A program made the translations under genes and the position numbers. A stretch of 64,000 bases of DNA from Calcarisporiella thermophila CBS 279.70 (lineage: Eukaryota; Fungi; Calcarisporiellomycota), in contig NW_027192225.1 in assembly GCF_041956535.1 (NCBI RefSeq), positions 64,890 to 128,889 of the forward strand. The letters are read 5' to 3'. Position 1 is the stretch's first letter; each line of letters starts with the position of its first letter. The notes under the pieces were generated by a model. It did not search any database, was not told where the DNA came from, and saw only the letters and a list, made by a program, of their open reading frames with translations. Below, piece by piece: positions 10,455-20,856 of the stretch.

Positions 10455-11730
10455 CTAACAAACCCATTTCGCGTCCACTTTATTCGGTTCCAGCGAGTTG
10501 TCCAGCACCGCGACCACGTCCTCGACATGGGAGGTGGAGAGATCCTGCAGGAACGGCAGCATGTCCAACAGTTCGGTATCGTGGGGGTCCGAGAACCAAG
10601 AGGACACGGGGACCGCATTCATGGGGTGGAAAATATACGAGACGGGGGAGTTGTCTATGATGACGACGTTGCGTAAATCACGCCCTAGCTGCGACAGATC
10701 CTTGACGTAGTTTCCCTTGTGCTGGTAGCAAGACTCTCGGAAGAGGCGATGCTTCACCACCTTATGGATGTCAAGGAGATCCAGCACCGGGTCGGCGTAC
10801 TAGAAGCGGCATGAGGCGAGTGAGAAAGGGAGAAATAAAATAAAACATAGCGGGAGCATGGAATCACCTTGGCAAGACTAGCGGTAAAGACGACCACTTC
10901 GAAAAACTCCCCCACTCGCTTTAAGAACTCGTCTACTCCTGGCCGTTTCATCACGTACACATTATGTATCTGGTTCTCAATCTCCACCGGCACTACAAAA
11001 TCGGCCTTTTGGACCACCTATGATAGCGTTGAGGGGAGGAGGATAAAAAAAAAAGCACGTCAGCACGCAGAGCTCCAACCATGCGTCCATCGCTATGGCT
11101 AACCTTGAATGAGCTGTGGACTAGCGTTTCATCCAAATCGAGCACCAAGCATTTTCGCCCGCTATCCTCCGGAGCCAGCGGAGCTAAAAGCCAACATGGC
11201 TCTTCCTTCCCCTGATGCCCAAGATGCTCTTCTTCTACTATGGCGTCTTCCTGAGGTACTTTTCTCTCCTCCTCGTGGGGGGGATCGGCCGCTGGGCTTG
11301 TGGCGGCGACGGGGGCCTGTTTGGCTAGATTGAGGAAGCGGGGAGAGTCGAGATCCAGAAAAGCGCGTGAAGTGCAGCAGAGAAGGAGAGACAGGAATCC
11401 GCGGGGCTGTTTTTGGGTATGCGAGGGTGAGGTGGGTGATTTAACGAGAAGGCCAGGATCTGGCGTTGACTTTGAATTGATGTTGGATGGTCGCACGTCA
11501 ACCACTGCATTGGAATCATAGTTAAAGGCTCAGAATTGCGTCCGAGTGCATAATGGATATCATATCCTGGTAGAATGCACGCGTTGAGAAGGGAAAAAAA
11601 AAGGCTCACCTTTATTGGATGGATTGGCATTGGTTTTTCCATTCGCGGAAGCCTGCGTAATGACGTTGGCGAGAACGGACGACGGAGATCCATCTGGTAA
11701 GACTTGTGTTATAAGCGATTCAGTTGTCAT
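10455..11730 (-). CDS. PSR1: CTD small phosphatase (FCP/SCP, NIF domain), Psr1/Psr2-like
   Basis: [16 protein letters not shown] (DxDx(T/V)), [49 protein letters not shown]-terminal ESLITQV and an internal GFLSLLLCC acylation-type motif. Confidence 0.93.
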
Positions 11731-14482: not shown

Positions 14483-17450
14483 ATGACGAGGTCAAATGTA
14501 TGGCCGTTCTTACTCCTCTGCTTATACCCTCTAGCCGCAAATGCCCAGCAGATGCCGCCATGCGTGGTGGCCATTAACAATGCCCAGCTCTGGTCATTGC
14601 AGTCGCGCGCCTCCACGGTACAGGTTCCATTTAGCACGGCCGAGGTCCAATGGAAATCCATGGGCGATCTGCCCCAGGCTATCTCGAATTCCTACTGCGT
14701 TGACGCGGGCGACGGAAAGGTATTCATTCTTGGGGGAAGCTATGGCTCGTCGATTGTACTGGATGATCTGAAGTGTAGAGCAGGTAAGTCCCCATCCTAG
14801 TGTGCTTTGAAGAAGCCACAATCCGCAACCGCCATTCCTGACCCGCCTTTTCACTCTAATCCCAGTAGCTTCGGCTTCAAGTTCTTCGGACACAACCTCT
14901 TCCTCCTCTTTTGTCCTCTCGGCTGTGTCCAGCAGCACCGAGAGCTCCTCGACCTGGTCCTCCACCACCACCACCACCACCGAAGAGGAGTCGACCGAAA
15001 CCCAAGCCACAGAGACGACCAAGGAAACCAAGCCCTGGACCCCACCGCCCACCTCCCAGCCTTCCACTCCTCCTAAGCCGACAGACACTCCAAAGCCATC
15101 CCCGAAACCCTCTAACGGCGAGACTACTAAATCGCAAGACAAACCCAACACGTCGAACGAGGAAAAGCCCACGTCGCCCAATGGCGAAAAACCCCCGAGC
15201 CCTTCCCCTAGTGCCCCCAAGGGGAATGATGGAGGCCAAGGCCAAGGTCAAGGTACCGGGAACGAGAAACCTAATGGAGTTAACCTCAATCTCAAGCTGC
15301 GCAAGCGATCGCACCGCCACCCGCTCGTAAAGCGCCAATCTCAAGTGTCTCTATTCTACTACGACACCACAAAGAACAACCTGTGCCAATCACCCCCCAT
15401 CACTGGAGAGGGAGTAGCCACCCTTTTCCCGGCAACCGCAGCGGTCGCGACCATGATCGATGCAAAGAACATGTTCATTGTTGCCGGGTACGACGGCTCC
15501 CTCAAAACCCAGACGCTAGACCTGGCCACCTGGAAGCTCAGCTCTATCCAAGAGTCTGGCCAGAAGCCGGACAAGCTGGCGCCGGGCACCGCGATCGGCG
15601 TGTATGACAAGAAGATCTACCTCTTTGGGGCGTCGGCCTATAGCGACTCCGCCAGCGATAAGTTCTTCTACGTGTATAAATTTGACTTGGATTTGCATGT
15701 TTGGACCAAGCTGGCGGTTCCCGCCAATGGCGTCGACATGACCAAGGTGGTCGGCGCGATGGGCGCAGACAAGAAGATGTATCTTGCCCCGACCCAGGGC
15801 AATTCCAGCGCCATCTATGTCTTTGATCCGGCGGCGGAGAACCTGACCCCCCTGACCGTGTCCTCGGCCGGGGCAAACTCCTCCCCGGGCGGGGCGGGGC
15901 TGTCGAATGCTCGTGCCGTGGCACTGAACAGGCAGGTGGCCTTTGTCAAGGGCTCGGGCAGCGGCGGAAACCCCGCGGTGTATGCTTTCGATACGGTGAA
16001 GGGAGAGTGGACGGCGCAGCTCAACCCCGGGGACGCATCGGCCCCGCCCAGCAATGGCGCTGGCAATGGCGGCAAGAATGTGGGCGCCATTGCCGGCGGG
16101 GTCGTCGGGAGCTTGGTCGTCATTGGAGTGGCCGTGGGGCTGGTTATCTTTTTCAAGCGCCGCCGGCAGAATTCCGACATCGTGTCGATGGTGCTGCAGG
16201 AAAAGACGCCGTTTGGACGCGTGTCGCTCCAAGGCACCAACAAGAGCAACCAGGGCAGCACCGTGGGCGATCTCCCGATGATGCTTGAGGAGCGGCCGGA
16301 GCACTACGCCATGAATCTCAGCTCGGGCGGCATGAACCCGCACATGCAGCACCCCGACCCGCTGCAGTACCACTACGCCCAGATCGAGGCCCTGGCCTCC
16401 TCCCACCCCTATCAGCCCCCACCGCAGCAGCAGAGCAACACGCACTTTGACCAGCGCACGGAGCGCAGCAGCAGCGATTCGCGCCGGGGGCGAGTGCTCG
16501 CGTCCAGCGAGGAGCTGTGGGAGAACTACCTGTTCGTGAACACGGTGGACATCGCCGACCAGGCGGCTGCCGCAGCCCTCGACCCCCACGCGCCCTCCGG
16601 CACCCTCGCCCTCCACGACTACACCCTGGCCGAGCCCGACGAGCCGCTCTGCACCGCCGACGCCTCCCTCCTGCGCAGAGCCCTCTTCCATCGCACCAAC
16701 GACACCATGTCGCTGCGCTTCTACCTGCACGAGGAGGCCTTCAGCCGCGAGGTCGCGTTCACCAACTACCTGCGGTCCTCCTTCGTCCTGGGGTCGCGCA
16801 ATGCCTACCAGGTCCGCTCGCCCTTCCACATCGACTACCCCTACGTGATGATCACGGAGCAGACGCAGTACCGGCTCGACCACATGATCCGCTCGCGCCC
16901 CAGCTTCGACGACGCCATGTACTGCCGCCTGGTGGCGCGCGACCTCGCCCAAGTGCTGGCCTTCATGCACGGCAAGGGCGTGGTGCACCTGAGCGTGGAG
17001 CCGGCCGCCTTCCTCAGCGAGGGCTCGGACATGACCAGCTGGAAGATCGGCGGGTTCCAGCGCGCTCGCTTTGTCGGCGAGCCGGTGCCGGACGCGATTG
17101 GCGCGGGCTCGTTCGTCGGCGCGTACTCGGCCCCCGAGCTCTTCCTCTCCACGCCCCAGCAGGCACACCCCAGCATGGACATGTGGGGCCTGGGCGCGCT
17201 TCTGTACGAGCTGTGTGCCCGCCAGCCCCTCTTCGCCTCGGTGGAGGAGGCTCGGGGTGCGCTGCTGCTCGTCGAGGACGACGGCACCGAGGCGCTGAAT
17301 CGGCACTGGGAGCTCCCCATGGATCTGGCCAGCGAGTGCGACGAGATGATGCGCGAGGCCATTCTGGGCCTGCTGCGGGTCGATCCTCAGGAGCGGTTCG
17401 ACGGGGCCAGGGTGCTGCGGGCCATCGGAAGTGGGTCCCAATGGGATTAG
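14483..17450 (+). CDS. Single-pass receptor-like pseudokinase (signal peptide, Kelch/mucin ectodomain, TM, kinase fold), ~961 aa
   Basis: Exon 1 (14483-14783) has the signal peptide MTRSNVWPFLLLCLYPLAANA and a Kelch unit (GKVFILGG). Intron 14784-14865/14868 (NAGNAG) joins it in frame to ORF 14925-17450. Further Kelch-like units: MFIVAGYDG, KKIYLFG, YKFDLDLHVWTKL, YVFDP, YAFDTVKGEW. TM at ~16080-16154 followed by KRRR. Kinase-fold motifs: LAFMHGKGVVH, YSAPE, DMWGLGALLYEL, DPQERF. Confidence 0.85.
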
Positions 17451-17473
17451 ACGCGCCCCCGCTTCGTTTGTAT

Positions 17474-17494
17474 TTCTTCTTCTTCTTCTTCTTC
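17474..17494 (+). repeat. (TTC)7 microsatellite in 3' UTR
   Basis: Seven direct TTC units just after the stop at 17450. Confidence 0.8.
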
Positions 17495-18121
17495 TCTTAG
17501 GCTCATAATAATTTTTGGTTGACTATGGATTTTCCTCTCTTTTCGTTTAATACCTTTTTGTTTGCTACCCTCTTCTCTTCACGCGTCTCGCCTTCTCTCC
17601 TCTCCCCTTCCCTCCCCTCACTTATTTAAAAAAAGTATTTATCCTAATGTTACTATTCCCATTGACTGTGTGCTAGCTGTATTATTCATTTCTCTTTTGC
17701 TTTGGACCTATTAATTTCACCACCTTTCTCTCCTTTGCCCTTCGCTTATATCCCAATAAATTAAATACGAATACCATACAAGATAGATAAGAATACTAGC
17801 ATTAAAGTAGAATAAATAATAACCAGAGTAGAAGAATCGAATGGCGGTGTGGAATGGTTGAGGTGGGGGGGAGGGGGGTCATGGCAGGGGAGGATGGCCC
17901 CTCGTATTAGCGGAGATAAGTAGAGAAAGGCCCAGCCCCACTGAGAGTGTCCAAGAATAAAATGAAGTAGAGAGAGAGAACAAAAAAAAATAGGTGAGGC
18001 AGTATTAAGGAGAGGTTGAAAACTAAGGAGAGATCGATATTGCATGAATGATGTTTGCCTCAATTATCCACGGATAAACGGGGGGGGGGGGCGCTGTATG
18101 GATGTCCCCTCCTCTTCCTCA

Positions 18122-19075
18122 TTATACGAGCTGTAAATAGTTGCTGGGAGCAATGCCCACGGTTCCGTCCGCCTTTCGAGCCTGCCACCACTTCCCACTG
18201 GTGCTCGCGATCTCCAGTATCTCATCCTTGGCGAAGGAGAGCTCATTGGGGTCCTCCGGGTTGGCCTCGTAGGAGTAGAGCGCCTTAGCCTTGTGCGCGT
18301 ACTGAGCGTTCGGCGACACAATCACCGTGTTCTGGTCTACCATGGGAGGGACGTGCTCCTCCCCTGCATTGGCAAGCGGCGTAGGGTGCGAGGGGAGCAT
18401 GGTGGTCACTGAAGTGTATGTGTCGCTGGTCCGGTGATTTCCGAAGCTTTGTGAAGGAGTCTTATGCTCGGGCATTTTGGCATTCATGGGCATGCAATAG
18501 GGCGAATTAGCATAGTAAGCCACAATGGTATTTGCATCGCTACCGAACACGATCACCCAAGCGAATTGCACGAGAAGCATGAGGACGCCTCCAGCGGTAA
18601 TAGCTTGTGCGGGAGGCCAAGAGATGCGAGCAACGCCACTGACGTAGATGGTCAGGATGGAGATGCTATAGACAAGGAATGCCAGTATCTGGAGTAGCAG
18701 AACCGGGTCCACTGTGAGAGGGGGTGTTTGGAAAACTTTCACAGAACCAGAAGACTCACAGCATGGCGATGGGCTCTAAATTGATCGAATGTAATGGCCA
18801 AAAAAATCCCCAGCACCAAGATTAGTTCGAAAATAGCGGGCCACCAAGTGGAATTGCCGAGAGGGCCAGACGCGCATGTCCCTCCAAAAAAGATAATGGC
18901 GCCAATCTATATTATGGAAGCGCAGAGAATAGGAGTAAGGGGGGGGAGACCGCGAAGAGGAAGAATGGTATGGAAGCAAAGGGATGCAGAAATCATGACA
19001 ACTTACAGCGTTTATCCCGAGCGTCACGGCAAGGAATGCGTTGCCGGCAATGTGACCGAAATCGAACGTCGCCAT
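18122..19075 (-). CDS. SHO1: High-osmolarity signalling sensor/adaptor Sho1 (4 TM + SH3)
   Basis: Four N-terminal hydrophobic helices over 3 exons (..[10 protein letters not shown]..; ..[19 protein letters not shown]). C-terminal SH3: [50 protein letters not shown]. Confidence 0.92.
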
Positions 19076-19599: not shown

Positions 19600-20856
19600 T
19601 TAGTTAGGCGGTGGACTTGGCTGGGAGCCGGCTATCACCGTTTTTGTCACCACGATCCTTTTATGTTTGGGCGAGCCCACTGGTTCGGCCGGCCCTGCTG
19701 CAGGTTCGCCAGGTGCACCTGAGCCCTCTTGGCCAGCCCCGGGAGCAGGCTGGCCCGAACCACCGGGTGCGGCTTCTTGGCCTTGGCCTTGGCCGCCGCC
19801 CATGCCCGCCGCGTCCGGGCCAGGCGCTGCGGGGTTCTGCTCAGGGCCAGGGGCCGGGGCTCCCTGTCCAGAAGCCTCAGGCGATCCCAACCCAGAGCCG
19901 GACGCTTCTGGAGGCGGAGCTCCCTGTTCCGGCGGTGGCGAGCCGGCCTGAGGGGGCTGGCCGCCTTGGCCAGCTTGTGCGGATGGGTCCGGAGCGCCTA
20001 GGCCGGGTATAATCATTCCCTGGTCAGGAGGCTGTCCCTGGCCGCCAGAGGATCCCTCCGGAGCAGCGGGCTGGGATGGGGGGCTTTGGGCAGACACGTC
20101 TGGGGGCGCCTGTTCGGGAGCTGCAGGCTCTGCGGCGGCGGGAACCATGCCTGCGTCAGGGGCTGCTTGGTCCACTTCCGACGATGAAGCCGAGGCTCCC
20201 TTGCCCGAAGTATTGCCGCAAATAATGTCAATCTGTTGTTGGATGGCAAGGATGGTGGCTTGCTTGATGGCCTCAATTCCATCCAACACGGCTTTGGCCT
20301 TGTCGCCGGCTTGTGCTTTGATGGCCTTTGCCTGAGCATCGAATCCGTCGATCATCACCTTGCGCTGGGTGTCGAGGGCCTGCGCCTGCTTATTTCCGCA
20401 CACGTTACCGCTGGGGGGGACGGGGGTGGGGATGACGGGGGGCACCGTCGTATCGGTCGGAGGGGGAGGGACGGTCGTGGGCGGGGGTGGGGGAGGCGTG
20501 GGAGGCGTGGGAGGCGTGGGAGGGGGTGGGATGGTGGTCGGGGGCGGACTCGTCTGTGTTGTAGGGGTGTCCGTGGTTTTCGAGGTCTTCGAGGTCTTCG
20601 AGGTCTTCGAGGAGTCTGAGGTGACAGGGGTGCTGGAGCTTTGCGGAGGGGACGTTGGCCCGCCGCTGGTAACGGGGGAAAGCGGAGCAATGGTGCCTCC
20701 GGCTCCCGCGTCTGGCGGCTGTGGGACCGGAAACCCGCCCAGAATTTCGGTCGGCAAGGGCGCGGGGGCGGCCTCTTGGCGACGGTGGACACGGACAGGA
20801 TTGGCGAGCACCATGGGTGCGGCGACCAGCAGCCCGAGAGTTATAAGCTTCATCAT
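19600..20856 (-). CDS. Secreted Pro/Gly/Thr-rich protein of unknown function
   Basis: Intronless 418-aa ORF. Signal peptide MMKLITLGLLVAAPMVLA, RR-Q processing site, SKT and PPT repeats, a central ~60-aa helical segment bounded by two Cys, and a PAG/Q-rich tail. Confidence 0.8.
   Translation of the reverse strand: MMKLITLGLLVAAPMVLANPVRVHRRQEAAPAPLPTEILGGFPVPQPPDAGAGGTIAPLSPVTSGGPTSPPQSSSTPVTSDSSKTSKTSKTSKTTDTPTTQTSPPPTTIPPPPTPPTPPTPPPPPPTTVPPPPTDTTVPPVIPTPVPPSGNVCGNKQAQALDTQRKVMIDGFDAQAKAIKAQAGDKAKAVLDGIEAIKQATILAIQQQIDIICGNTSGKGASASSSEVDQAAPDAGMVPAAAEPAAPEQAPPDVSAQSPPSQPAAPEGSSGGQGQPPDQGMIIPGLGAPDPSAQAGQGGQPPQAGSPPPEQGAPPPEASGSGLGSPEASGQGAPAPGPEQNPAAPGPDAAGMGGGQGQGQEAAPGGSGQPAPGAGQEGSGAPGEPAAGPAEPVGSPKHKRIVVTKTVIAGSQPSPPPN

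Follow-up and report, generated by a model that had tools for sequence, protein, structure and literature searches.

Environmental sensing in fungi is usually attributed to G protein-coupled receptors, histidine kinases, transceptors, and tail-only wall sensors, and the question raised by the locus described here is whether fungi also own proteins built like receptor kinases. A cross-kingdom survey counted only 54 transmembrane (TM) kinases in 18 fungi; histidine kinases made up about 30% of these, and Ire1 was the main Ser/Thr family (PMC10463195). This backs the premise of an earlier sequence-only reading of this DNA that single-pass receptor kinases are generally considered absent from model fungi apart from Ire1. 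The locus lies on the + strand of a 64,000-nucleotide stretch of the Calcarisporiella thermophila genome (the window; positions 64890-128889 of contig NW_027192225.1, named C35 here) and encodes a protein of 961 amino acids, identical after splicing to NCBI VTP21DRAFT_7990 (P0001 below), which is annotated as an "uncharacterized protein." It is proposed, with a probability of roughly 0.6, that this product is a type-I receptor-kinase-like protein whose pseudokinase domain works non-catalytically, as a scaffold, after events at an extracytoplasmic Kelch propeller. The layout on which this proposal builds, a signal peptide followed by an ectodomain, one TM helix, and a kinase domain, was found by sequence heuristics; the positions of all parts are collected in Table 1.

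The gene consists of two exons (14483-14783 and 14866-17450). A single stop-free open reading frame (ORF) of 841 amino acids (14925-17450, + strand) holds propeller blades, the TM helix, the linker, and the kinase domain, so the fusion of Kelch, TM, and kinase parts is no artifact of the gene model; the sequence-only reading had argued the same from the common exon of TM helix and kinase, and the coordinates that it gave for the MSLR, HLS, and GFQ motifs proved exact when re-read. The GC content at third codon positions (GC3) climbs in the 5′ to 3′ direction, from 0.64 in exon 1 and the insert described below through 0.77 in the propeller and 0.90 in the linker to 0.93 in the kinase part, and the DNA flanking the gene has 41-55% GC. 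An antisense ORF of 641 amino acids (15516-17441) and a +2 ORF of 327 amino acids, both lying over the gene, had no match in Pfam and were rejected as genes, being by-products of the high GC3. A run of T at window positions 17470-17500, shortly 3′ of the stop codon, is read as poly-Phe at the end of the +2 ORF and might belong to the 3′ untranslated region or to a polyadenylation region.

The C-terminal domain has the full kinase fold claimed for it earlier. The Pfam Pkinase profile (PF00069) matches residues 724-946 over profile positions 43-253 of 263 (E 7.4e-17; 62 bits against a cut-off of 31.7), and the AlphaFold2 (AF2) model, built from an alignment of 73 sequences, comprises five N-lobe strands, helix αC, and a full C-lobe, with a predicted local distance difference test (pLDDT) score of 90.9 and a predicted template modeling (pTM) score of 0.90. 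Foldseek matched it to CDK, DYRK, MAPK, and ULK structures at a TM-score of ~0.7 and E ~1e-14. Motif alignments against PDK1 and 72 kinases bore out the replacements at the catalytic positions and also the retained APE, DMWGLG, and subdomain-XI Arg, as previously reported from the letters alone. The Gly-rich loop consensus GxGxxG is missing, its place, the β1-β2 loop, being taken by the acidic, Gly-free sequence AEPDEPLCTADAS, and the αC Glu (E729) is kept. A pseudokinase is defined by sequence as a kinase fold missing at least one of the VAIK Lys, the HRD Asp, and the DFG Asp (PMC13519141, PMC4718504); the C. thermophila domain is a pseudokinase because all three are missing. Judged from these residues, it should no longer be able to transfer phosphate, and it probably binds neither ATP nor Mg, because the metal-binding Asn and Asp are gone and there is no glycine loop.

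The predicted extracytoplasmic part starts with a leader (residues 1-21) whose core is hydrophobic and whose -3 and -1 positions hold small residues; the A-x-A pattern of the signal peptide noted earlier is seen there, by the heuristic -3/-1 rule only. The following Kelch ectodomain was borne out in three ways. In Pfam, P0001 matches Kelch_KLHDC2_KLHL20_DRC7 (PF24681; E 7e-14, 52 bits against a cut-off of 50) and Kelch_2 (29 bits against a cut-off of 21.3). The AF2 model of the ectodomain, built from an alignment of 13 family sequences, is all-β with ~23 strands, with pLDDT mostly 80-98 for residues 263-486 and 62-92 for the predicted exon-1 strands (residues 27-86). When this model was compared with the PDB by Foldseek, nearly all of the top 50 matches were Kelch-type six-bladed propellers (E 1e-8 to 1e-10), among them LZTR1, KLHDC2, KLHL3, KLHL12, KLHL20, and designed SAKe proteins. 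A galactose-oxidase-type enzyme was considered and rejected, as the structural neighbors are protein-binding Kelch proteins (LZTR1, KLHDC2, KLHL) and not copper oxidases. Matches to NanM-like proteins, all sub-threshold, hint weakly at sugar binding. The propeller carries sequons at N413, N426, and N438, and the ectodomain has four Cys residues: Cys27 and Cys72 are conserved family-wide, and Cys98 and Cys274, present only in the three paralogues with an insert in the propeller, bracket that insert.

The TM helix is the sole strongly hydrophobic segment beside the leader and contains small-xxx-small motifs. Hydropathy and a reading of the sequence agree with the single TM helix and KRRR stop-transfer described earlier, and since the basic residues lie on the C-terminal side of the helix, the kinase domain should be cytoplasmic. 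A weak resemblance to TM_ErbB1 (E 0.016 in P0001) recurs in four family members, always below the cut-off, and was rejected as homology. Between membrane and kinase lies the linker, given before as about 150 amino acids with several Tyr residues and here delimited to the span in Table 1, which ends, ahead of β1, in a family-conserved P-[HS]-A-P-x-G-T motif.

Is this gene a singular construction? A six-frame search of the C. thermophila genome revealed four further loci (E 1e-25 to 1e-58), which makes five copies; these correspond to the NCBI models P0005, P0006, P0016, and P0018, all "uncharacterized." Each of them has an ectodomain, one TM helix, a basic stop-transfer, a linker, and a kinase-like domain, mostly in one ORF, and the C9 paralogue has an intron within the kinase domain. 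Active paralogues, for which the sequence-only reading had proposed to look, were absent from this genome, as all five copies are degenerate: the β3 position is R/E/V/N/E, the catalytic loop HLS, HLA, HLN, HLN, and YLT, and the DFG position GFQ, SFQ, AFH, NFS, and GFE.

Outside this species, residues 655-961 served as the query of an exhaustive HMMER search for relatives among 1.84 billion representatives. Among the best 150 relatives, about 25 that match over the full length rank ahead of ordinary kinases. A word-index protein search returned only the query for the kinase region and nothing for the ectodomain alignment, and a first word search with the whole exon yielded a single relative among a flood of low-complexity matches; it was HMMER that revealed the family. 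Its members come from Glomeromycotina (Ambispora gerdemannii, Paraglomus brasilianum, P. occultum), Endogonales (Jimgerdemannia flammicorona, Endogone sp.), and Mortierellomycotina (Mortierella, Dissophora, Modicella, Actinomortierella), with short models from the Mucorales (Chlamydoabsidia padenii) and Zoopagomycota (Piptocephalis tieghemiana), so that the architecture, which it had been suggested to search for in basal fungi, was found there. These proteins are annotated as "uncharacterised" or misnamed after the unrelated S6 kinase, AMPK, NUAK, or ULK2. They share an HL-x catalytic loop, the P-[HS]-A-P-x-G-T motif before β1, and a TM helix with a basic stop-transfer, and in most complete models the one TM helix lies 100-250 residues ahead of the kinase domain. 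Kelch ectodomains detectable by Pfam are present in Ambispora (96 bits), Paraglomus, and the Calcarisporiella trio.

The kinase-domain phylogeny called for earlier was computed as a maximum-likelihood tree (LG+C20) of the family rows with near-complete kinase domains and eight outgroup kinases, leaving out P0030, P0032, P0045, P0099, P0106, and P0115 as fragmentary or divergent. The family, P0001 included, is monophyletic against these outgroups (support 100/99) and divides along taxonomic lines into Piptocephalis, Glomeromycotina (97/99), Mortierellomycotina (99/98), and Endogonales with Calcarisporiella (94/92), the last split into two clades (P0001/P0005/P0006 and P0016/P0018) joined with Endogonales. 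By its clade, its motifs, and its TM helix, the C. thermophila gene belongs to a Mucoromycota Kelch-TM-kinase family, and on this evidence the family looks like one that descended vertically from at least the Mucoromycota ancestor. The interpretation given by the sequence-only reading holds for the architecture and for the loss of catalysis; the gene is moreover one of five paralogues in a Mucoromycota-wide family. Both Paraglomus species have tandem family genes, with the two P. brasilianum genes on contig CAJVPI010000183.1 (Table 1) and P0010 and P0014 of P. occultum on one 18.7-kb contig.

Two further groups of sequences are worth noticing. In Mortierellomycotina, the public models begin at or just past the TM helix and are probably truncated at the N-terminus, and in P0002 (Dissophora ornata, residues ~200-690) and P0054 (Mortierella sp.) about 500-700 amino acids separate the TM/RRRRR segment from the kinase, filled with many repeats resembling T-E-R-T-x-S-G-E-x-R-Y-x-I-G-G. 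The more distant P0099 (GCA_015499985.1), P0106, and P0045 have a GG-rich TM helix with a basic stop-transfer, a C-terminal kinase split by an insert, and an ectodomain with no match in Pfam, and may form a second subfamily.

The catalytic state varies within the family. Ambispora and Paraglomus have the Kelch ectodomain, the TM helix, and all catalytic residues (VAIKF/VAVKF, αC EREV, HLDIKPGNF, and DFE), without a canonical GxGxxG; they are non-RD kinases, because the Arg of HRD is Leu, and judging by their motifs they are apparently catalytically competent. In Mortierellomycotina the corresponding motifs are VKW, mostly HLNIRPxSF, and NFG, and in Endogonales the loop is HLE, HLDIS, or HLDIH, followed by NFE or EFx. 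The structural motifs (APE, DxWSxG, the subdomain-XI Arg, and the catalytic-loop His) are nearly invariant, whereas the catalytic ones vary, a pattern that indicates purifying selection on the fold and not on catalysis. As the replacements differ among lineages and paralogues and the structural motifs are nearly invariant, the simplest reading starts from an active ancestor in whose descendants selection on catalysis was relaxed while the fold stayed under selection: the dead forms probably descend from an active, non-RD (HLD) Ser/Thr receptor kinase, and several lineages, among them Calcarisporiella with all five of its copies, probably lost the catalytic residues afterwards.

These data bear on two other explanations. 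One assumes that P0001 is an active atypical kinase using displaced residues, as WNK or Haspin-like enzymes do. The complete and confidently modeled fold, the retained αC Glu together with a basic Arg on β3, and the catalytic appearance of the Glomeromycotina relatives would agree with it; however, five independent requirements fail together (Gly-rich loop, β3 Lys, HRD Asp, catalytic Asn, and DFG Asp), and what replaces these residues varies across the five paralogues (S/A/N/N/T at the Asp, G/S/A/N/G at the DFG position), which argues against a conserved alternative catalysis and makes this explanation highly improbable. The other holds the gene for a decaying, functionless remnant of a receptor kinase, in keeping with the loss of catalytic residues, the long terminal branches, and the lack of any expression data. 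We give it very little credence, given an intact frame of 961 codons with canonical splice signals, five intact paralogues, structural motifs kept in more than 20 members, a high-confidence AF2 model, and a GC3 of up to 0.93 in the coding frame.

The mucin-like insert in the propeller leads to a third alternative. AF2 gives pLDDT below 50 for residues 102-259, which marks them as disordered; P0005 and P0006 have like inserts at the same place, Glomeromycotina members have none, and two of the five Calcarisporiella copies lack it. A KRQ[S/E]SQ motif is common to the three C. thermophila paralogues with the insert, and the KR sites that follow the insert make Kex2-type processing possible. It might be speculated that in P0001, P0005, and P0006 the insert, with the KR sites and the Cys pair, is O-glycosylated and that these proteins possibly have a disulfide-linked two-chain form. 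Yeast signaling mucins work with Sho1, as do Wsc1, Mid2, Msb2, and Hkr1, and a convergent neighbor of the gene, an ORF on the - strand at 18122-18742, ~670 bp downstream, encodes a Sho1-like product that contains two hydrophobic segments and bears an SH3 domain at its C-terminus (SH3_1, E 4.9e-10).

Such observations could be read as those of a wall or osmosensor of the Wsc/Mid2/Msb2 type, in which the propeller would anchor to the wall, the insert would sense and perhaps be released by Kex2, and the pseudokinase tail would recruit a MAPK module, possibly with the neighboring Sho1-like protein. In its favor are the insert itself (145 amino acids, 52% Ser/Thr/Pro) with dibasic sites just behind it, the recurrence of insert and KRQ[S/E]SQ motif in three paralogues, the flanking Cys98 and Cys274, the convergent gene, whose product combines TM segments with its SH3 domain (E 5e-10), and the habit of the yeast mucins mentioned above. 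However, the insert is absent from Glomeromycotina, Endogonales, and two Calcarisporiella copies and is therefore a late addition and not part of the family core; neither a WSC domain nor one of another sensor family is detected by Pfam; the tail has a kinase fold; and both cleavage and O-glycosylation are predictions from composition and motifs. No Sho1-like gene was present in the 19.5 kb read around the P. brasilianum family member, and a conserved cluster with SHO1 was rejected, as at most one of the five paralogues can adjoin this SHO1-like gene. This sensor explanation is considered unlikely.

The location of the protein is the second debatable issue. The type-I topology fits the membrane of the endoplasmic reticulum (ER), Golgi, or vacuole equally with the plasma membrane, and the protein might act as an endomembrane stress sensor like Ire1 or PERK, with the propeller in the ER or Golgi lumen. 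In an Atlas feature search an Ire1-like cluster appeared among distant look-alikes at 0.87, which serves as a lead only. It is surface proteins that more typically bear mucin-like inserts and N-glycan sequons, and no ER-retention signal was noticed in P0001. Ire1, the main fungal transmembrane kinase (PMC10463195), has the same type-I topology; however, P0001 gave no match to a KEN/RNase domain (PF06479) and ends six residues past the kinase, so that Ire1 itself was rejected as an identity, and neither the PDB nor the HMMER ranking places the kinase of P0001 near Ire1. We regard an endomembrane sensor as improbable.

Several points weigh against the receptor-like pseudokinase as proposed here. 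Beside the ambiguity of the topology, the ectodomain alignment is shallow (13 sequences of 16-31% identity) and the exon-1 blade of the propeller is modeled with moderate confidence only; given the β3 Arg and the retained αC Glu, some nucleotide binding may, with low probability, persist. No RNA run is listed for the stretch. The score of 0.00 predicted for a homodimer of the pseudokinase domain speaks neither for nor against.

We infer a plasma-membrane site, ligand binding, lack of ATP binding, and scaffolding, and the following course of events may be envisaged for the receptor-like pseudokinase. The glycosylated propeller outside the cytoplasm would serve as a ligand-, glycan-, or wall-binding module, with a protein, a peptide, a glycan, or a wall polymer as the candidate ligand, and the disordered Ser/Thr/Pro-rich insert would be looped out of it, probably O-glycosylated. 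An event at the propeller would cause oligomerization or a conformational change across the membrane, mediated by the small-xxx-small TM helix together with the pseudokinase, after which the pseudokinase and the Tyr/Pro linker would form a docking or allosteric platform for cytoplasmic partners. Such a mode would resemble that of HER3, ROR, and RYK (PMC13259870) and of plant receptor pseudokinases (PMC5353636, PMC7158045, PMC11259431).

To which kinases is the domain related? The best relatives in the PDB are scattered at similar scores (PDK1, the C-terminal domain of MSK1, MAPK4/6, GSK3, STK17B, ULK3, TTK, and titin), spreading over AGC, CAMK, CMGC, and ULK kinases, and among NCBIfam models there were sub-threshold generic kinase matches alone. 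A tyrosine kinase (TK) or tyrosine kinase-like (TKL) type was rejected, as PF07714 (PK_Tyr_Ser-Thr) stays below its cut-off in P0001 (12.9 bits against 23.1) and the loop of the active relatives, HLDIKPGN, is of Ser/Thr type; in Ambispora, PF07714 scores 49 bits against 119 bits for Pkinase. From these comparisons the kinase is classed as an unaffiliated Ser/Thr lineage, independent of animal receptor tyrosine kinases and of the receptor-like kinases (RLK/Pelle) of plants. TKs are reported absent from fungi, and a figure legend on holozoan receptor tyrosine kinases includes a Kelch motif among the TK domains of unicellular holozoans (PMC4342544). In the ESM Atlas, the clusters nearest to P0001 (0.89-0.91), a lead without an alignment, carry Kelch_1, Pkinase, and PK_Tyr_Ser-Thr and come from Ciliophora and Porifera; since these proteins are not among the best 150 HMMER relatives, they are regarded as convergent. 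A Kelch ectodomain on receptor kinases is accordingly not unprecedented outside fungi.

For fungi, the literature searched contained no description of a Kelch-TM-kinase family, although a mention in Kwon et al. (2019), on pseudokinase evolution, is possible, and the family, as suggested before, is apparently undescribed. The novelty would lie in the kinase lineage and the kingdom in which such a receptor-like pseudokinase occurs, and in a domain combination new for fungi. If the proposal is correct, then a conserved Kelch receptor-kinase-like family is spread across Mucoromycota, apparently active in arbuscular-mycorrhizal lineages and dead elsewhere, and the receptor-kinase layout would have been invented a third time, independently of animals and plants. 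The family would also offer a natural series in which the conversion of receptor kinases to pseudokinases can be followed, and its members would be candidates for the perception of wall, glycan, or host signals in fungi with no such receptors known. A wider and rather doubtful proposal, put forward tentatively, is that Mucoromycota own independently assembled cell-surface receptor Ser/Thr kinases, catalytic in the early-branching arbuscular-mycorrhizal Ambispora and Paraglomus and repeatedly turned into pseudokinases elsewhere, and that the Calcarisporiella subgroup with the insert forms a processed two-chain receptor, maybe feeding into a Sho1-type pathway. This wider proposal would overturn the assumption that fungi have no receptor kinases bar Ire1 and would point to possible sensors by which mycorrhizal fungi perceive plant or environmental cues.

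Table 1. Positions of the parts of the C. thermophila gene in the window, and of related loci elsewhere.
Feature	Position	Strand	Residues	Basis or remark
Start codon and predicted signal peptide	14483-14545	+	1-21	ANA/QQ, cleavage after A-N-A; heuristic -3/-1 rule
Exon-1 part of Kelch propeller	14546-14783	+	22-100	Weak Kelch_4 match, E 0.003; AF2 strands
Intron	14784-14865	+		82 nt, phase 1; GTAAGT donor, CTAAT branch-like, CAG acceptor; removal reproduces P0001 exactly
Mucin-like insert in propeller	14866-15299	+	101-245	145 aa, 52% Ser+Thr+Pro
Dibasic sites, RKR and KR motifs	15303-15338	+	pairs begin at 247, 256	Composition and alignment
Remaining blades of six-bladed Kelch β-propeller	15339-16028	+	259-488	Pfam, AF2, Foldseek
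Single TM helix (VGAIAGG...VIFF)	16080-16154	+	506-530	Kyte-Doolittle mean 2.68 over 19 residues
KRRR stop-transfer (positive-inside)	16155-16166	+		Directly after TM helix; same feature in all paralogues
Juxtamembrane linker, probably cytoplasmic	16173-16604	+	537-680	Low complexity, five Tyr, PYQPPP stretch
Pseudokinase domain	16605-17429	+	681-955	Complete N- and C-lobes
MSLR replacing VAIK	16707-16718	+		β3 Lys to Arg718; alignment to 72 kinases
HLSVEPAA replacing HRDLKPEN	16986-17009 (HLS 16986-16994)	+		Asp to Ser810, Lys to Glu812, Asn to Ala815
GFQ replacing DFG	17052-17060	+		Asp to Gly830; alignments to PDK1 and 72 kinases
APE, retained	17130-17138	+		Nearly invariant across 72-kinase alignment
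DMWGLG, retained	17178-17195	+		Nearly invariant across 72-kinase alignment
Subdomain-XI Arg, retained	17394-17396	+	944	72-kinase alignment
Stop codon	17448-17450	+		Six residues past end of kinase fold; no further domain
Paralogue	C5:913896			Degenerate catalytic motifs
Paralogue	C9:222560-223496			Degenerate catalytic motifs
Paralogue	C46:30562			Degenerate catalytic motifs
Paralogue	C5:65251			Degenerate catalytic motifs
P. brasilianum tandem pair (L013)	CAJVPI010000183.1: 4368-8025, 10001-12905			1026 and 767 aa, both Kelch and Pkinase

Two other places in the window may be mentioned. An ORF of 418 amino acids on the - strand (19600-20856) has a signal-peptide-like start and very long, low-complexity arms rich in Pro/Thr/Gly/Ala around a short Cys-containing helical core. 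Exons at 10455-11505 (- strand) encode what we take, by the DLDETLVHS motif alone, to be an FCP1/NIF-type small CTD phosphatase.

The yeast sensors Wsc1, Mid2, Msb2, and Hkr1 share with the insert-bearing protein a Ser/Thr-rich, presumably O-glycosylated region, a single TM helix, a basic stop-transfer, and the context of the fungal surface; however, they have short unstructured tails and neither a kinase fold nor a propeller, and homology was not detected. Ire1 (PMC10463195) is likewise a fungal type-I membrane protein with a sensor outside and a cytoplasmic kinase fold, and it differs by its KEN/RNase domain, an unrelated sensor domain, and the lack of a close kinase relationship, the C. thermophila kinase being dead. 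The closest architectural precedent is given by the Kelch kinases of holozoans, with ichthyosporean/corallochytrean receptor tyrosine kinase architectures (PMC4342544), and of the Atlas, in which Kelch repeats and a kinase are found in one protein; these belong to the TK/TKL group, with PF07714 in 100% of members, and the comparison is one of feature similarity, not of alignment.

The receptor pseudokinases of animals (HER3, ROR1/2, RYK, PTK7, EphA10/B6, and STYK1; PMC13259870) have the same type-I layout, with a folded ectodomain, a TM helix, and a linker, and the same kind of substituted kinase fold, and partner-based signaling is expected in both. They belong to the tyrosine-kinase group, whereas the fungal family is of Ser/Thr type with a Kelch propeller, and, unlike them, C. 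thermophila has no active co-receptor of the same family, all five copies being degenerate. The RLKs and receptor pseudokinases of plants, for example MRH1 (PMC5353636), DRIK1 (PMC7158045), EFR with its non-catalytic signaling (PMC11259431), and the non-RD receptor kinases (PMC8463890), show the same receptor layout and a frequent loss of catalysis. The non-RD loop of the active members and the walled organism are also common to both groups. To our knowledge, Kelch is not among the ectodomains of plant RLKs. The plant proteins are TKL/Pelle kinases, whereas the solved kinases nearest to the fungal family are CAMK, CMGC, AGC, or ULK members, and for this reason the fungal architecture appears to have been assembled independently.

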